DNA from: Macrostomum lignano
Taxonomy: Eukaryota
Direction of reading: 5' to 3'
DNA: 64,000 nucleotides
Assembly (NCBI GenBank): GCA_002269645.1
Contig: NIVC01000033.1
Location: 361,335 to 425,334 of the forward strand
Shown here one piece after another: positions 60,001 to 62,999 of the stretch (positions are counted from its first letter, which is position 1; the number at the start of each line of letters is the position of its first letter). Position numbers and translations under genes: made by a program. Under the pieces are notes generated by a model. That model saw only the letters and a program-made list of their open reading frames with translations, was not told where the DNA came from and ran no database searches.

Positions 60001-62999
60001 TAATGAGTCAGTTTACTAGAAACTCAAGTTCGGGAGCTTCTCTATACGTTCTAGGGTTAAAGAACTCATAGAAAAAGTAGATACGAATTCTTCCAAAAGA
60101 TAAAATAAAGTTCATTGGAAGTCGTTCTCCTGGAAGAGTACAGTTCTAACATTGGATGAGTACCGTATACGAGGCACAGGGCAGGCCGTATGAGTATGAG
60201 TGCTGTGCCTGCGTACAGTATTGGCGCGCCTGCATGGCTCAGGAGTCTGCGGAACGGGCAGAAATGCCGTCAGCGCTGGCTGCGCGACGACGTCGCCGAA
60301 GCCGTTGCGCCAAGGTGCCCGCGGCCCTCCTGAAGTTACTAGTATTAGTAGTATTAGCCGTACCGGGAGCATTCCTGTCCACGCGTCCAACCGAGCCACC
60401 GACCCAACAAACGCAGGGGTTACTTCTTCAATTATGAAACGGCGCCAAACGGCGAGACTTCGGTTTCCGTCGACGCGCGCAGCTGGCGCGCACAGTGCTT
60501 CCGCTATGACGACGTTTTCATATCGTTGATAACGCTGTTCACTGTCACCACGGGAGAGGGCTGGAACTTGTAGGTTGATCAGCCCAGCTTCCCTTCCTTT
60601 ACCCCGAAACCCTTGGTGGCTGCATTCCTCATTCAATCCGGTTCATTGGGAAGCGCATTGTTGGGACGCACAAGTGTAGTCATGCTAAACCTAGCATTCG
60701 GTGAATGGTGGTAGAGTTTTGGTCAAGGACATTTTTTACTCTAAATTTGCTGTCGCATAGCTTCAATGCAGCTTTAACACGTTTCTTATTTATCTAATCC
60801 TCGAACAACAAAGGGGATTTTATTTTCACTACGACGGCGACGCCGAAAAGCCCGAGATGCGCGAGCGGCAGTGGAGCAACCAGAGCTTCCACTACGACAA
60901 CATCTACAACTCCATGCTCACCTTGTTCACCGTGTCCACTGGCGAAGGCTGGCCAACGTAATGTCCAACCCAGTTTCTGCAAAGTCCCTAGGCTTGTACT
61001 ATGGCCAGTGTTGTCTTGCACGATCTGTTGTGTCTTGCAGACAGTATTGCATCTCAGATTCCTCAGTCGCAAATAGAGCGACAGACTTTCACTATTCTCT
61101 CATCATTGCTTTGCTTCTCCACTTATTTTTATCTGTGCTAGGCCAATACGTACCTGACCTCACGTTCTGCCCCAATGCCCCAATAACAACAACCTTACTC
61201 CCTGCCCACTCACTCTCTCGTGTAACACCAACCTCACTCCCTGCCCACCCACACTCTCTTGTGTAACACCAACCTCACTCCCTGCCCTCTCACTACTCTC
61301 TTGTGTAACACCAACCTCACTCCCTGCCCTCTCACTACTCTCTTGTGTAACACCAACCTCACTCCCTGCCCACCCACACTCTCTTGTGTAACACCAACCT
61401 CACTCCCTGCCCTCTCACTACTCTCTTGTGTAACACCAACCTCACTCCCTGCCCTCTCACTACTCTCTTGTGTAACACCAACCTCACTCCCTGCCCACCC
61501 ACACTCTCTCGTGCAACACCAACCTCACTCCCTGCCCACCCACACTCTCTCGTGTAACACCAACCACACTCCCCACCCACACTCTCTCATGTAACACCAA
61601 CCTCACTCCCTGCCCACCCACACTCTCTCATGTAACACCAACCTCACTCCCTGCCCACCCACACTCTCTCGTGTAACACCAACCTCACTCCCTGCCCACT
61701 CACACTCTCTCGTGTAACACCAACCTCACTCCCTGCCCACCCACACTCTCTTGCGTAACACCAACCTCACTCCCTGCCCTCTCACTACTCTCTTGTGTAA
61801 CACCAACCTCACTCCCTGCCCTCTCACTACTCTCTTGTGTAACACCAACCTCACTCCCTGCCCTCTCACTACTCTCTTGTGTAACACCAACCTCACTCCC
61901 TGCCCTCTCACTACTCTCTTGTGTAACACCAACCTCACTCCCTGCCCTCTCACTACTCTCTTGTGTAACACCAACCTCACTACCTGCGCACTCACACTCT
62001 ATGTTTGAACTATTTATGAATAACTTTATTATTTTTTATGAATTTCTTTGATTGATTTTTTCACCAGCTTTTCTATCGCCCTAAAGTTCCTATGCTTTGC
62101 GCATGATATTATGCAACTTATTACGCAGTAAACTCAACTCTGTTTCATGGAATCGCAACAAAGCAGGGCAACCTAACAAAACTTGGCGATTGCAGTGTGC
62201 TGATGAACTCCATGGCCGCCACGCACGTTGACACGGGGCCGGTGCCCGACTACCGCAAGGAGATGGCCATCTTCTACGTCATCTTTTTCATCGTGTTTCC
62301 CTTCTTCTTTGTGAACATCTTCGTCGCCTTGATCATCATCACGTTCCAGGAGCAGGGCGAGAATGATCTGGTGGACCAGGAGATCGACAAGAACCAGGTG
62401 AGGGCCGCTTGACAGTCGAAGCCAGCTTGATAGTGCCGTTCAACAGGGACCTAAAGAATATTTTGAGAAACATTTTTACAGTCTGGATTATTTCTGTCGG
62501 AGATCCAGGCTTCAGTTAAGACAAGGGGCCCAAAATCCTCTAGTTACCGTATCCCGTAGTTTGTTAGTCATTAATCTCAATAGCATGAAAAAAAGCAAAA
62601 AAATATGAAATAATTGACAACCTGTTCGATTTGGCCCCTGATGCCAGAAATCCAGTAGCCAAATGGCAATTTTCAACAGTGTGACTTATGAAAACCCAGT
62701 CAAAATTGAAGACATTCCAAGAATATTTTAATTAGAAGCCTAGATATGCAGTATTGGTTTGTTATACGGAAAAAGTACACATTGGACTCGCACAAAAGCA
62801 ATATGACGTTCCTAATTCGCTCTCCACAACACAGCGCCAGTGCATTGACTTCGCCATCAACGCGAGGCCGCTGTGCCGCTACATGCCCAAGAACAAGAAC
62901 TCCATCAAGTATCGAATTTGGCGATTGGTGGTGTCTACACCGTTCGAATACTTCATCATGGTGATGATTGCGCTAAATACTCTAATTCTGATGATGAAG
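23824..62999 (+). CDS. cac: Cav2-type voltage-gated calcium channel alpha-1 subunit, multi-exon, continues beyond the window
   Basis: Cav2-diagnostic segments: [79 protein letters not shown]. Filter glutamates TMEGW, T(S/G)EDW, TGEGW. Splice phases are consistent across all exons listed below. Confidence 0.96.
24235..24430 (+). mobile_element. tRNA-head SINE family A, copy with deleted B-box region
   Basis: TGTAGTCTAGTGG A-box; CAGCTGTAAAATGGGTGCCAGCATTAGCTG core shared with 36086-36310. Confidence 0.75.
26886..27205. repeat. 20-bp minisatellite
   Basis: Unit GAGACTGTGAGATAGACACT. Confidence 0.93.
27611..28250. repeat. 48-bp repeat (about 4 copies) grading into GA-rich low-complexity sequence
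   Basis: GTGAGACAGTGCGAGGGGGACATTGTGGGTGAGAGTGATGATGAGAGA units, then (GA/GT)-rich. Confidence 0.9.
30311..30559 (+). CDS. cac: Cav2 N-terminal exon (MATL...IIIEWG)
   Basis: Acceptor TTGTCAG|A; ends at the U12 donor GG|ATATCCTTT. Confidence 0.92.
30560..30851 (+). other. U12-type AT-AC intron
   Basis: 5' ATATCCTTTT, branch TTTTCCTTAACC (about 30808-30819), 3' CTGCAC|G; removal restores EWG-PFEY. Confidence 0.93.
30852..30957 (+). CDS. cac: Cav2 IS1 exon
   Basis: [35 protein letters not shown]|GTGAGT. Confidence 0.95.
31352..31491 (+). CDS. cac: Cav2 IS2-IS3 exon
   Basis: [47 protein letters not shown]|GTAAGA. Confidence 0.95.
32542..32633 (+). CDS. cac: Cav2 IS3b-S4 alternative exon A (92 nt)
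   Basis: TTGCAG|...[30 protein letters not shown]...|GTAAGT. Confidence 0.88.
33780..33880 (+). CDS. cac: Cav2 IS3b-S4 alternative exon B (101 nt, canonical)
   Basis: TTGCAG|...[33 protein letters not shown]...|GTACGG. Confidence 0.92.
35823..35969 (+). CDS. cac: Cav2 IS5 exon
   Basis: [48 protein letters not shown]. Confidence 0.95.
36086..36310 (+). mobile_element. tRNA-head SINE family A with CORE-like central domain
   Basis: A-box TGGCCTAGTGG, B-box GGTTCGATT (36137-36145), GCTTCAGTTCACCCAGCTGTAAAATGGG core; homologous to 24235-24430. Confidence 0.8.
36440..36675 (+). CDS. cac: Cav2 domain I turret/pore exon
   Basis: ...[46 protein letters not shown]|GTAAGT. Confidence 0.95.
36776..36885 (+). 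CDS. cac: Cav2 IS6 exon
   Basis: [37 protein letters not shown]. Confidence 0.95.
37201..37376 (+). CDS. cac: Cav2 AID (beta-subunit binding) exon
   Basis: [41 protein letters not shown]. Confidence 0.95.
37474..37590 (+). CDS. cac: Cav2 I-II linker exon
   Basis: [39 protein letters not shown]; phase 1 to phase 1. Confidence 0.85.
38296..38523 (+). CDS. cac: Cav2 I-II linker / IIS1 exon
   Basis: ...[47 protein letters not shown]|GTAAGT. Confidence 0.93.
38719..38831 (+). CDS. cac: Cav2 IIS2-S3a exon
   Basis: [37 protein letters not shown]|GTAAGT. Confidence 0.95.
39081..39193 (+). CDS. cac: Cav2 IIS3b-S4 alternative exon A (113 nt, GC donor)
   Basis: [37 protein letters not shown]; AG|GCAAGT. 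Confidence 0.88.
39820..39932 (+). CDS. cac: Cav2 IIS3b-S4 alternative exon B (113 nt)
   Basis: [37 protein letters not shown]; AG|GTACTA. Confidence 0.87.
40999..41111 (+). CDS. cac: Cav2 IIS3b-S4 alternative exon C (113 nt)
   Basis: [37 protein letters not shown]; AG|GTTAGT. Confidence 0.87.
41682..41813 (+). CDS. cac: Cav2 IIS5 exon
   Basis: [43 protein letters not shown]. Confidence 0.95.
41830..42062 (-). mobile_element. dispersed repeat family B (probable tRNA-head SINE) filling most of a small intron
   Basis: The minus strand starts with tRNA-like TAGTGTGATTGG...GCTTCGAATC; the body is homologous to 14250-14372 and 54430-54600. Confidence 0.6.
42093..42165 (+). CDS. cac: Cav2 domain II turret / P-helix exon
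   Basis: [24 protein letters not shown]|GTGAGC. Confidence 0.94.
42305..42428 (+). CDS. cac: Cav2 domain II filter-S6 alternative exon A (124 nt, U12 donor)
   Basis: [41 protein letters not shown]; T|GTATCCTTC. Confidence 0.87.
43107..43224 (+). CDS. cac: Cav2 domain II filter-S6 alternative exon B (118 nt, canonical, U12 donor)
   Basis: [39 protein letters not shown]; T|GTATCCTTG. Confidence 0.92.
43225..43564 (+). other. U12-type GT-AG intron; 3' end shared with the donor at 42429
   Basis: GTATCCTT donor; branch TTTTCCTTAACC at 43506-43517; the first downstream AG is at 43563-43564; removal restores FGN-YTLLNVF. Confidence 0.9.
43565..43665 (+). CDS. cac: Cav2 IIS6 distal exon
   Basis: [34 protein letters not shown]|GTGAGC. 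Confidence 0.95.
43715..44302. repeat. 28-bp minisatellite, about 21 copies
   Basis: Unit CATTCACTCTCACCCTGCTTCTCTCACC. Confidence 0.96.
45221..45823 (+). CDS. cac: Cav2 II-III linker exons (45221-45339, 45544-45608, 45706-45823)
   Basis: Phase-consistent chain KKDEMMRD...GGQFSY / DDDTGKK...VTSQ / KSDTSA...[18 protein letters not shown]; the last exon is conserved, the first two are called on splice phase. Confidence 0.8.
45356..45500. repeat. 12-bp tandem repeat
   Basis: Unit GGACAGGTGGGA. Confidence 0.93.
45829..48350. repeat. about 2.5 kb (TCTG)n microsatellite starting directly after the donor site
   Basis: Read directly; recurrent GTGTATTT and GTGTCTTAGT interruptions. Confidence 0.99.
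49606..53930 (+). mobile_element. full-length Ty3/Gypsy LTR retrotransposon (Mag-like), 4325 bp
   Basis: 213-bp LTRs TGT...ACA at 49606-49818 and 53718-53930, identical by eye; 5-bp TSD CTCTG; PBS TGGCGACGAG at 49821; PPT GGAAGGGGGGAGAA at 53704-53717. Confidence 0.97.
49820..53722 (+). CDS. single gag-pol ORF (1300 aa): gag with Cys/His knuckles, protease, RT, RNase H, integrase
   Basis: CTRCGGNH...[14 protein letters not shown]; QIDCGAAVS; [15 protein letters not shown]; TCDAS; HEGHPG..C..C; [21 protein letters not shown]; PR-RT-RH-IN order. Confidence 0.97.
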   Translation: MATSGLPYPAEFQPVPGEPPVPWARWIKSFENFLVAGALEEASESRKKAILLHLLGEEGRRRAANVDASKSLQETKTALKAIFSSSRSVIAERFAFRQRAQHDGESIGDYVMALRELATNCKFDTFHDEMIRDQLVEKTCVPRIRERLLMEEDDLTLDDAIKKAERIEAAIRDAKQVSGPELHVKALSKKPKPAARHEKTAAAGPKCTRCGGNHGHKGECKAMGQKCRRCGKTNHFAKMCRMKAVSAIDTKEPAESSLTVLAVNNKSTDSLFCECRLGGQLIRLQIDCGAAVSLLNMETFKKSFARHPLLPTSTKLEAYGGSAIKTIGKVELPVTFNGIRTEATFYVADKGANILGRDLFQALGFKIFQGDNRVMSISETTIERDFPGIFDGLGRSKSFIHRTKIDASVKPVSQPMRKLPIGLKDEVTSEISRMEQQGIIEKVDASEWVSNVVVTRKKESNKVRLCVDLRQVNKAVIADRYPVPSIEDLSASINGSKCFSKLDLRQGYQQIPLHPDSRGLTCFITDAGLYQFTVVPFGLSSSGAAFQRALQTVLRGAPGAINIVDDILVHGKDETEHDKNLREVLGRIHREGFTLNREKCKFRQASVDFFGLVISADGIKPTKCNVDAILRIPEPSTVAQIQSFLGAVNFLHKFIPHYSAIAEPLRQLLKKDADWHWGERERTAFRTLKSAVTSSPVLAHFDCQAETYVTCDASLDGLGAVLSQVQNEKEVPIAFASRALSPAEKRYSAGEREALACVWSIERWHYYLYGRRVTLRTDHKALTTLLDSKGMGHRPLRIHRWVERLRGYDVRFEHIPGADNKCADMLSRWATTERVPAEETDEEGYVYAVVDSKTTLTADALATATKEDEVLQAVLQYISGGWPTKVDSSLKPYFNVRDELFCWNNGQCLGRGERAIIPTSLRLQVIEEAHEGHPGVVRSKQRCRDTVWFPGIDRQVEDYVKNCTACTLAEKSGKPQQTIVTPIEWPDGPWDKVEIDIFGEVAAAPRHQRFLLVIHDLYSKWPEIAAMETVTSANIIKTLRKLFGRWGVPKMLISDNGPQFVSDEFEEFLRAEGIKHSRVSRYYPQGNGGVERFNRSLKEGLAANLRAGAKFEDAIDLVLKTYRTSQHALTGLTPAELMIGRKLRSGLQLLRPTPVQQRDDSDLRDSIAQRQAKNADYTNKRRRARDSTLQAGDWVWRQTPYRAHKLATRLKEPLKIASKAGRNTFVLSDGTKWQASRLVKCNSPPADNGAADQEDDWFDLPLPPAPPPRTGEPPPPPELRRSTRARRQPARYPLPEGGRM
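54126..54321 (+). CDS. cac: Cav2 IIIS1-S2 exon
   Basis: [35 protein letters not shown]...[16 protein letters not shown]. Confidence 0.95.
54335..54620 (+). mobile_element. dispersed repeat family B copy
   Basis: CCTAACGAT...GCCGCTGTACACTCCTGTGTGAG is homologous to 14281-14330; GGCTCGATTCC B-box-like motif. Confidence 0.55.
54685..54791 (+). CDS. cac: Cav2 IIIS3 exon
   Basis: [35 protein letters not shown]. Confidence 0.95.
55130..55320. repeat. degenerate 21-bp tandem repeat
   Basis: GATATAACGGTAGAATAGTCT-like units. Confidence 0.85.
56583..56755. mobile_element. MITE-like element with about 45-bp inverted arms
   Basis: TAATATAGACTGGCTGTTGAGGACTGAAATGAACTGAAA versus TTTCAGTTCATTTCAGTCCGAACAGCCAGTCTATATTA. 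Confidence 0.7.
56920..57186. repeat. 24-bp minisatellite
   Basis: Unit GTCTGGAGAAGTACCTGGTAGGCA. Confidence 0.95.
59607..59715 (+). CDS. cac: Cav2 IIIS4 exon
   Basis: [36 protein letters not shown]. Confidence 0.95.
59797..59957 (+). CDS. cac: Cav2 IIIS5 exon
   Basis: [53 protein letters not shown]. Confidence 0.95.
60417..60569 (+). CDS. cac: Cav2 domain III turret-filter alternative exon A (153 nt, divergent)
   Basis: CGCAG|...[50 protein letters not shown]..|GTAGGT. Confidence 0.86.
60814..60957 (+). CDS. cac: Cav2 domain III turret-filter alternative exon B (144 nt, canonical)
   Basis: AAAG|...[47 protein letters not shown]..|GTAATG. Confidence 0.9.
61190..61985. repeat. 42/39-bp C-rich minisatellite
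   Basis: GTGTAACACCAACCTCACTCCCTGCCCTCTCACTACTCTCTT and a shorter CCCACCCACACTCTC variant. Confidence 0.95.
62196..62397 (+). CDS. cac: Cav2 IIIS6 exon
   Basis: [15 protein letters not shown]...[30 protein letters not shown]...DKNQ. Confidence 0.95.
62835..62999 (+). CDS. cac: Cav2 III-IV linker / IVS1 exon
   Basis: [55 protein letters not shown]|GTAAGG. Confidence 0.95.

Follow-up and report, generated by a model that had tools for sequence, protein, structure and literature searches.

Does one calcium channel gene of the flatworm Macrostomum lignano, a transgenic and regenerating model, hold two interchangeable versions of its domain III pore mouth? The question arises from two similar neighbouring exons, here termed A and B, in a 64,000-nucleotide stretch of contig NIVC01000033.1 (assembly GCA_002269645.1, positions 361,335 to 425,334 of the forward strand). 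This stretch is the window referred to below, and all positions are counted from its first letter. The gene occupies the + strand from at least 30438 to 63062, as delineated by tblastn with full-length Cav2 proteins, and continues past the window end. The reading favoured here, which we hold to be probable, is that A and B stem from an old tandem duplication, are both intact and kept, and most likely serve as alternative exons, as a rule mutually exclusive, from which two pore variants would result. We infer that exon A is spliced into mRNA and that the use of the two copies is exclusive.

The domain III exon pair of a Cav2 gene

The product of the spliced B variant matches the solved structures of Cav2.3, Cav2.2 and Cav2.1 with 261-251 bits, compared with 221-205 bits for Cav1, 126-108 bits for Cav3 and at most 92 bits for Nav channels. 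The match extends from the S5 to the S6 segment of domain III (IIIS5 to IIIS6), corresponding to residues 1271-1436 of Cav2.2. Both A and B set the glutamate of the domain III position of the EEEE ring in a TGEGW filter context, and this residue aligns with E1365 of Cav2.2. The corresponding context is TFEGW in Cav1, and Cav3 channels carry an aspartate. Two core cysteines of the domain III S5-P region (FFYC...SEC) sit in the constitutive upstream exon, and two conserved cysteines have been described in this region (PMC4436565). These scores and motifs mark the gene as that of a Cav2 (non-L-type, high-voltage-activated) alpha1 subunit, an assignment already proposed in the initial annotation and borne out by the Cav2 structures outscoring those of Cav1, Cav3 and Nav.

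The features of the pair are collected in Table 1. Both copies begin after two codon bases (CA, at 59957) and close with two codon bases, the third being supplied by the downstream exon (62196); the upstream exon joined to the downstream exon through either A or B gives an open Cav2 frame. Exon A encodes 50 residues between a split-codon Q and a split-codon F, and exon B 47 residues between a split-codon Q and a split-codon T. Twenty of the 47 aligned residues are identical, and the global alignment score of the two peptides is 112 versus -24 ± 10 in shuffles (z = 13.9). Taken alone, each of them matches the Cav2 domain III S5-P region, and the upstream exon aligns with residues 1271-1322 of Cav2.2. 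The two exons are adjacent, of similar length and on the same strand, they share a splice-site pattern and frame compatibility with both flanks, and they are homologous to each other, all of which are published features for the prediction of mutually exclusive exons (PMC3228551). The initial annotation had described two paralogous exons of 153 and 144 nt, both multiples of three, ending in TGEGW and separated by 244 nt; its coordinates, lengths and motifs are exact. Translation also upholds the peculiarities it had ascribed to exon A, namely a turret longer by 3 residues, an extra cysteine (codon 60496-60498) that has no counterpart in the cysteine-free exon B, and GWN where exon B has GWP.

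At the protein level, the filter glutamate is kept in both copies and the charge ring is the same. The differences lie around it. The cysteine of exon A and a serine of exon B both align with Asp1345 of Cav2.2, a residue of extracellular loop III (ECL-III) at the pore entrance, which forms a hydrogen bond with ziconotide and counts among the four toxin contacts that are subtype-specific; ECL-III also belongs to the alpha2delta interface and shifts upon ziconotide binding (PMC10761187). This cysteine is a third, odd one beside the two constitutive turret cysteines. The start of the P2 helix, equivalent to Pro1368-Met1369 of Cav2.2, reads Asn-Phe in A and Pro-Thr in B, and several P1 residues are substituted in exon A relative to B. 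Because the extra cysteine aligns with the ziconotide contact Asp1345, the earlier idea that the exchange tunes pore-blocker binding gains some support. By inference from these positions, exon A may plausibly affect block, permeation or the docking of alpha2delta. An N-Q-S N-glycosylation sequon is found in exon B at 60878-60886, just before the P1 helix, and is absent from A; its serine is the residue that is a cysteine in exon A.

The two copies differ at 45% of their nucleotides. At the DNA level they can be aligned only over the 3' 72 nt (71% identity), and comparison of the introns flanking the A unit with those flanking the B unit found no similarity. By the Nei-Gojobori method, the proportion of synonymous differences (pS) is 0.80, i.e. 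saturated, versus a proportion of nonsynonymous differences (pN) of 0.36 overall and 0.20 in the P1 helix and filter (Fisher p ~1e-5 and ~9e-5, respectively). Since pS is saturated and pN is not, the duplication should be old and A long kept as coding sequence. Neutral mutation of exon B to the divergence observed leaves an open frame and 20 or more identities in 0.1% of trials (P = 0.001), and 10 of the 11 residues of TLFTVxTGEGW are kept in 0.002% (P = 2e-5). Codon usage gives exon A a score of 0.26 in its own frame versus -0.70 and -0.64 in the other frames; intron windows score -0.68 ± 0.32, and about 1% of them reach the exon A value. The GC content at third codon positions is 0.72 in exon A, with a gene mean of 0.75. 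The donor of exon A (GTAGGT) is nearer to the consensus than that of exon B (GTAATG). At the level of sequence, the duplication, the intactness of both copies and purifying selection are demonstrated, and for most of its history exon A has evidently been constrained at the protein level.

Table 1. Features of the Cav2 gene in window positions; exons A and B were delimited by sequence reading and translation
Feature	Position	Strand	Description
Upstream constitutive exon	59797..59957	+	IIIS5 and proximal half of domain III turret; ends with CA of split Gln; donor GTAAGT
Exon A (divergent copy)	60417..60569	+	153 nt; distal turret, P1 helix, selectivity filter TTGEGW-N; filter Glu codon 60556-60558; acceptor aaacgcAG, donor GTAGGT
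A-B intron	60570..60813	+	244 nt; no similarity to other introns, no significant structure
Exon B (canonical copy)	60814..60957	+	144 nt; distal turret, P1 helix, filter STGEGW-P; filter Glu codon 60944-60946; acceptor acaaAG, donor GTAATG
Downstream constitutive exon	62196..62397	+	P2 helix, post-filter loop, IIIS6
IS4 pair (IS3/S4)	32542-32633 / 33780-33880	+	92 nt / 101 nt; both 3n+2; AG/GT intact
IIS3-S4 pair	39081-39193 / 39820-39932	+	113 nt each; both 3n+2
II filter-S6 pair	42305-42428 / 43107-43224	+	124 nt, TSEDW / 118 nt, TGEDW; both 3n+1
Local hairpin candidate	60552..60593	+	encloses exon A 5' splice site; -19.7 kcal/mol; marginal

Splicing control and the other tandem pairs

The favoured reading has a single ancestral exon of ~144 nt, coding for the distal domain III turret (ECL-III), the P1 helix and the filter, duplicated in tandem long ago. 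Exon B would provide the canonical pore. Exon A would provide a lineage-specific pore mouth in which the EEEE glutamate is kept together with a cysteine at the Asp1345 position, an Asn-Phe start of P2, a longer turret devoid of the sequon, and P1 changes. The choice between them would presumably depend on trans-acting splicing regulators and on non-consensus splice sites competing with one another.

The initial annotation had seen neither frameshift surveillance nor steric hindrance as an evident means of enforcing exclusivity, and on both counts it holds. Enforcement by frameshift and nonsense-mediated decay is ruled out, both exon lengths being divisible by three. The AG-exclusion zone of exon B (60772-60813, 42 nt) contains four yUnAy motifs located 17-37 nt from the acceptor, and it begins 200 nt from the exon A donor. 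Steric hindrance between A and B is unlikely, as the branch-point candidates of B lie far from this donor. Frame neutrality is inherited and not special to this pair, because the ancestral domain III exon was itself ~144 nt long and an independent pair found elsewhere (see below) measures 144 and 141 nt. Nor are such lengths unusual, about one third of validated C. elegans clusters sharing the property: 10 of 29 validated mutually exclusive clusters are divisible by three, and half of these 10 have no short intron (PMC4165533).

Sliding RNA duplex prediction over the three introns revealed no intron-intron duplex stronger than those of shuffled introns. Folds around the acceptors and donors of A and B are unremarkable (z = 0.4 and -0.9), and an inverted-repeat scan returned only weak repeats of 11-12 nt. 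The hairpin candidate at the exon A donor scores z = -1.8 in a 49-nt window and 0.03 in a 76-nt window, and is a lead only. Regulated splice-site competition is the default explanation of the A/B choice, and it may be leaky, with some double inclusion.

Three other tandem pairs are present in the same gene. The copies share 17 of 30 residues in the IS4 pair (pS 0.71, pN 0.26) and 23 of 37 in the IIS3-S4 pair (pS 0.90, pN 0.28); in the latter, the donor is GC in the first copy (AG / GCAAGT at 39194) and GT in the second. The third pair spans the domain II selectivity filter, P2 and IIS6, with a GTATCC donor common to both copies; the first reads ILTSEDWN and has a Gly-rich insertion, versus the canonical ILTGEDWN of the second. 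All three pairs are intact, homologous and phase-matched, with pS well above pN. As their lengths are not divisible by three, including or skipping both copies would disrupt the reading frame. Among the four, only the domain III pair has lengths divisible by three, and its spacer is also the shortest. That four pairs have been systematically retained is most economically explained by functional alternative splicing.

The introns around the domain III pair show some further features. In the intron preceding exon A, the 3' half (60161-60416) has 61% GC versus 37% in the 5' half, and it displays no pyrimidine tract; its codon usage resembles that of coding sequence in none of the frames, and it does not fold significantly (z = 0.4). 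An antisense open reading frame (ORF) of 174 aa (60112-60636, minus strand) spans exon A and this GC-rich segment; it has probably arisen by chance, the DNA being GC-rich, and an identical product is not on record. The intron following exon B contains, within 61184-62000, a C-rich minisatellite with a 42-nt unit (19.9 copies, 94% matches), and a second C-rich minisatellite with a 39-nt unit (12.8 copies) follows the next exon at 63128-63634. Their units are related, with the common stretch CACCTCACTCCC, and together they explain why the GC skew is strongly negative at the window end.

Competing explanations and their weight

A comparison of exon A with 1.8 billion representative proteins returned a single A-like protein, the M. 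lignano UniRef entry A0A1I8FJ67 (P0026). This model chains the upstream exon, A and B in this order, and its in-frame stretches are identical to the window. As it derives from an independent assembly with the same order, the A-then-B arrangement is not an artefact of the present assembly. It also switches reading frame repeatedly. The frame switches and the inclusion of both exons probably reflect indel errors in the assembly and automatic exon chaining, not an isoform, and the current UniProt model including both exons is probably wrong. Exact-product look-ups for P0026, for the downstream-exon read-through ORF and for the antisense ORF gave nothing on record. In other sources, the domain III exon is found with the same borders as a single copy, namely in Schistosoma margrebowiei (L005, L006), Fasciola gigantica (L007) and a marine metagenome locus. 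A flatworm-wide ancient duplication is rejected for the Neodermata examined, L005, L006 and L007 each having one copy, with the limit that the L006 contig ends shortly after the exon.

Several observations weigh against A and B being two functional alternatives. Exon B scores 87 bits against a hidden Markov model of 68 domain III exons and is a typical Cav2 exon; exon A is the lowest of the 68, with 64 bits (median 90). Near-invariant residues are altered in A, the proline after GW being replaced by asparagine and FHYDN by FRYDD. Its acceptor has an AG-exclusion zone of only 21 nt, in which no yUnAy motif, branch point or pyrimidine tract is seen. No A-like exon from other organisms was found among the representative proteins, and the two schistosome Cav2 loci and the Fasciola locus just mentioned show one copy. 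Protein database searches with exon A plus its flanks and with the 172-aa spliced A variant, and an exhaustive comparison of exon A with representative proteins, gave no transcript-derived fragment of either isoform; the short-query searches were insensitive (a single candidate each, and P0026 missed), so that their negative outcome carries little weight. Lastly, no frame, steric or RNA-pairing device for exclusivity was found in the window sequence, and the pairwise ratio of nonsynonymous to synonymous divergence (dN/dS) may be compatible with a recent silencing of A.

The divergence of exon A in the profile, its altered residues together with the unpaired cysteine, its atypical 3' splice site and the lack of A-like sequences from other organisms or of transcript-derived A in the protein searches are also what would be expected of a relic, once functional and now unspliced or spliced at noise level, drifting while B alone makes the channel. 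With one genome compared, acceleration of exon A by specialisation and recent loss of its use are not separable. Such a relic would nevertheless have retained an open frame, intact AG/GT sites and phase, a gene-like and frame-specific codon bias, and a pN far below the saturated pS, so that only a recent loss of use fits these data; the other three pairs, likewise intact, point instead to systematic retention. This explanation appears unlikely, although it has to be taken seriously. That A and B are in-frame tandem cassettes, both included or both skipped, is quite improbable. It would suit the divisibility of both lengths by three, and in C. elegans several predicted mutually exclusive pairs with such lengths were in fact tandem cassettes (PMC4165533). 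An intron of 244 nt can be spliced, one of 81 nt occurring just upstream, and P0026 joins A to B; that entry, however, stems from a frameshift-ridden, indel-rich assembly, and its A-B chain is not transcript evidence. Moreover, a channel made with both exons would have two P1-filter segments between IIIS5 and IIIS6, and one made with neither would lack the filter, both outcomes being incompatible with the four-fold pore of Cav structures.

It might also be supposed that one exon belongs to a second Cav2 gene or haplotype and was mis-joined in the assembly. The M. lignano genome is partly duplicated, other flatworms have two Cav2 genes, and two distinct schistosome loci were seen here. Yet the order of upstream exon, A and B recurs in the independent assembly model, A lies in the correct intron, orientation and phase with no break or repeat junction in its flanks, the gene contains four such pairs, and the divergence is far too deep for haplotypes. 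A mis-joining is very hard to credit.

A further-reaching proposal, which must be called doubtful, is that of a combinatorial Cav2 gene with four independent mutually exclusive pairs (two at S4, one at the domain II filter-S6 and one at the domain III turret-filter), up to 16 isoforms, and a functionally distinct exon A channel. If it were true, the pore mouth of the latter would display a free redox- or metal-reactive cysteine at the Asp1345 position and a P2 start devoid of proline, permeation, block or alpha2delta docking would be altered, and splicing would do what other flatworms do with two Cav2 genes. For the more limited reading favoured here, i.e. two alternative pore exons in domain III, the use of A would yield matched Cav2 pores differing only in ECL-III, P1 and the P2 start, including the position of the ziconotide-contact residue. 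Alternative pore-loop exons are natural experiments on the outer vestibule, permeation and pharmacology of four-domain channels. The cases documented so far come from Cav3, with the turret of domain II, and from NALCN, with the filters of domains II and III; the presynaptic release channel Cav2 is not among them. The practical impact remains modest until expression of exon A is shown.

Relation to known exon pairs

The literature searched contained no report of a Cav2 exon pair for the domain III turret or filter. Mutually exclusive exons are known in vertebrate Cav genes (8/8a, 21/22 and 31/32 of Cav1.2, and 37a/37b of Cav2.x), in which they tune gating, pharmacology or modulation. Like A and B, they are tandem-duplicated homologous exons. 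To our knowledge, they encode S6, S2, S3 or C-terminal segments, and none swaps the domain III turret, P1 helix and filter. In Drosophila cacophony, also a Cav2 gene, mutually exclusive pairs are found at IS4 (IS4a/b) and in the I-II loop (I-IIa/b) (PMC11828482). Cacophony and the Macrostomum gene are both invertebrate Cav2 genes with exon pairs, and the Macrostomum IS4 pair recalls IS4a/b; in contrast, neither of the two pairs described in cacophony involves a pore loop.

The initial annotation had likened the domain III pair to exons 12a/12b of invertebrate Cav3 T-type channels. The precedent is real: in Lymnaea and other protostomes, the Na+/Ca2+ preference changes when the S5-P1 turret of domain II is exchanged (PMC9694082, PMC4436565). 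Both cases present tandem homologous alternative exons for a turret beside the pore helix, with differing cysteine content. The analogy is nonetheless loose, as the Macrostomum pair belongs to Cav2 and to domain III, keeps the same filter glutamate and adds a single cysteine. Cav3 exon 12 excludes the filter; its copies are marked by 3 versus 5 cysteines, and a turret lysine is critical. The segment exchanged in Macrostomum extends across P1 and the filter as far as the first residue of P2, with 1 cysteine in A versus 0 in B. Function has been demonstrated for 12a/12b, while the Macrostomum pair is known from sequence alone.

NALCN has mutually exclusive P-loop exons 15a/15b (domain II) and 31a/31b (domain III) that arose independently in several invertebrate lineages (PMC4436565, PMC3557258). 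As in the Macrostomum gene, the duplicated exons include the filter residue, and exon 31 also lies in domain III. Their alternative copies carry either E or K as the filter residue (EEEE versus EKEE or EEKE), unlike A and B; a filter switch of the NALCN type is ruled out, both exons encoding the filter glutamate.

A similar arrangement is found in an invertebrate Cav2 locus of a JGI metagenome (L001; metagenome 3300023220, contig Ga0255800_10245791), where this exon occurs in tandem at 527-670 (144 nt) and 716-856 (141 nt). Its borders and phase are as in Macrostomum, the length of each copy is a multiple of three, and one copy is canonical (QSGEGWP) and the other divergent (QSTEGWP). The canonical copy comes first in that locus and second in Macrostomum, and the intron between the copies is 45 nt long versus 244 nt; such a short intron plausibly excludes double inclusion by steric means. 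Because its divergent copy is unlike exon A (36% identity), the metagenome pair represents an independent event. The residue before the domain III filter glutamate varies among invertebrate Cav2 channels, which mostly have TGEGW and also TTEGW, TSEGWV, TAEGW or TNEGW (e.g. P0009, P0068, P0081). The TTEGW, TSEGW and TAEGW forms were considered as alternative exons and rejected; the TTEGW exon is the sole copy (434-577) in one compact locus (L002), and these forms look like lineage variants. Set beside the pairs of Cav3, NALCN and cacophony, A and B make, as genome anatomy, a credible new case of the mutually exclusive pore-loop exons known in four-domain channels.

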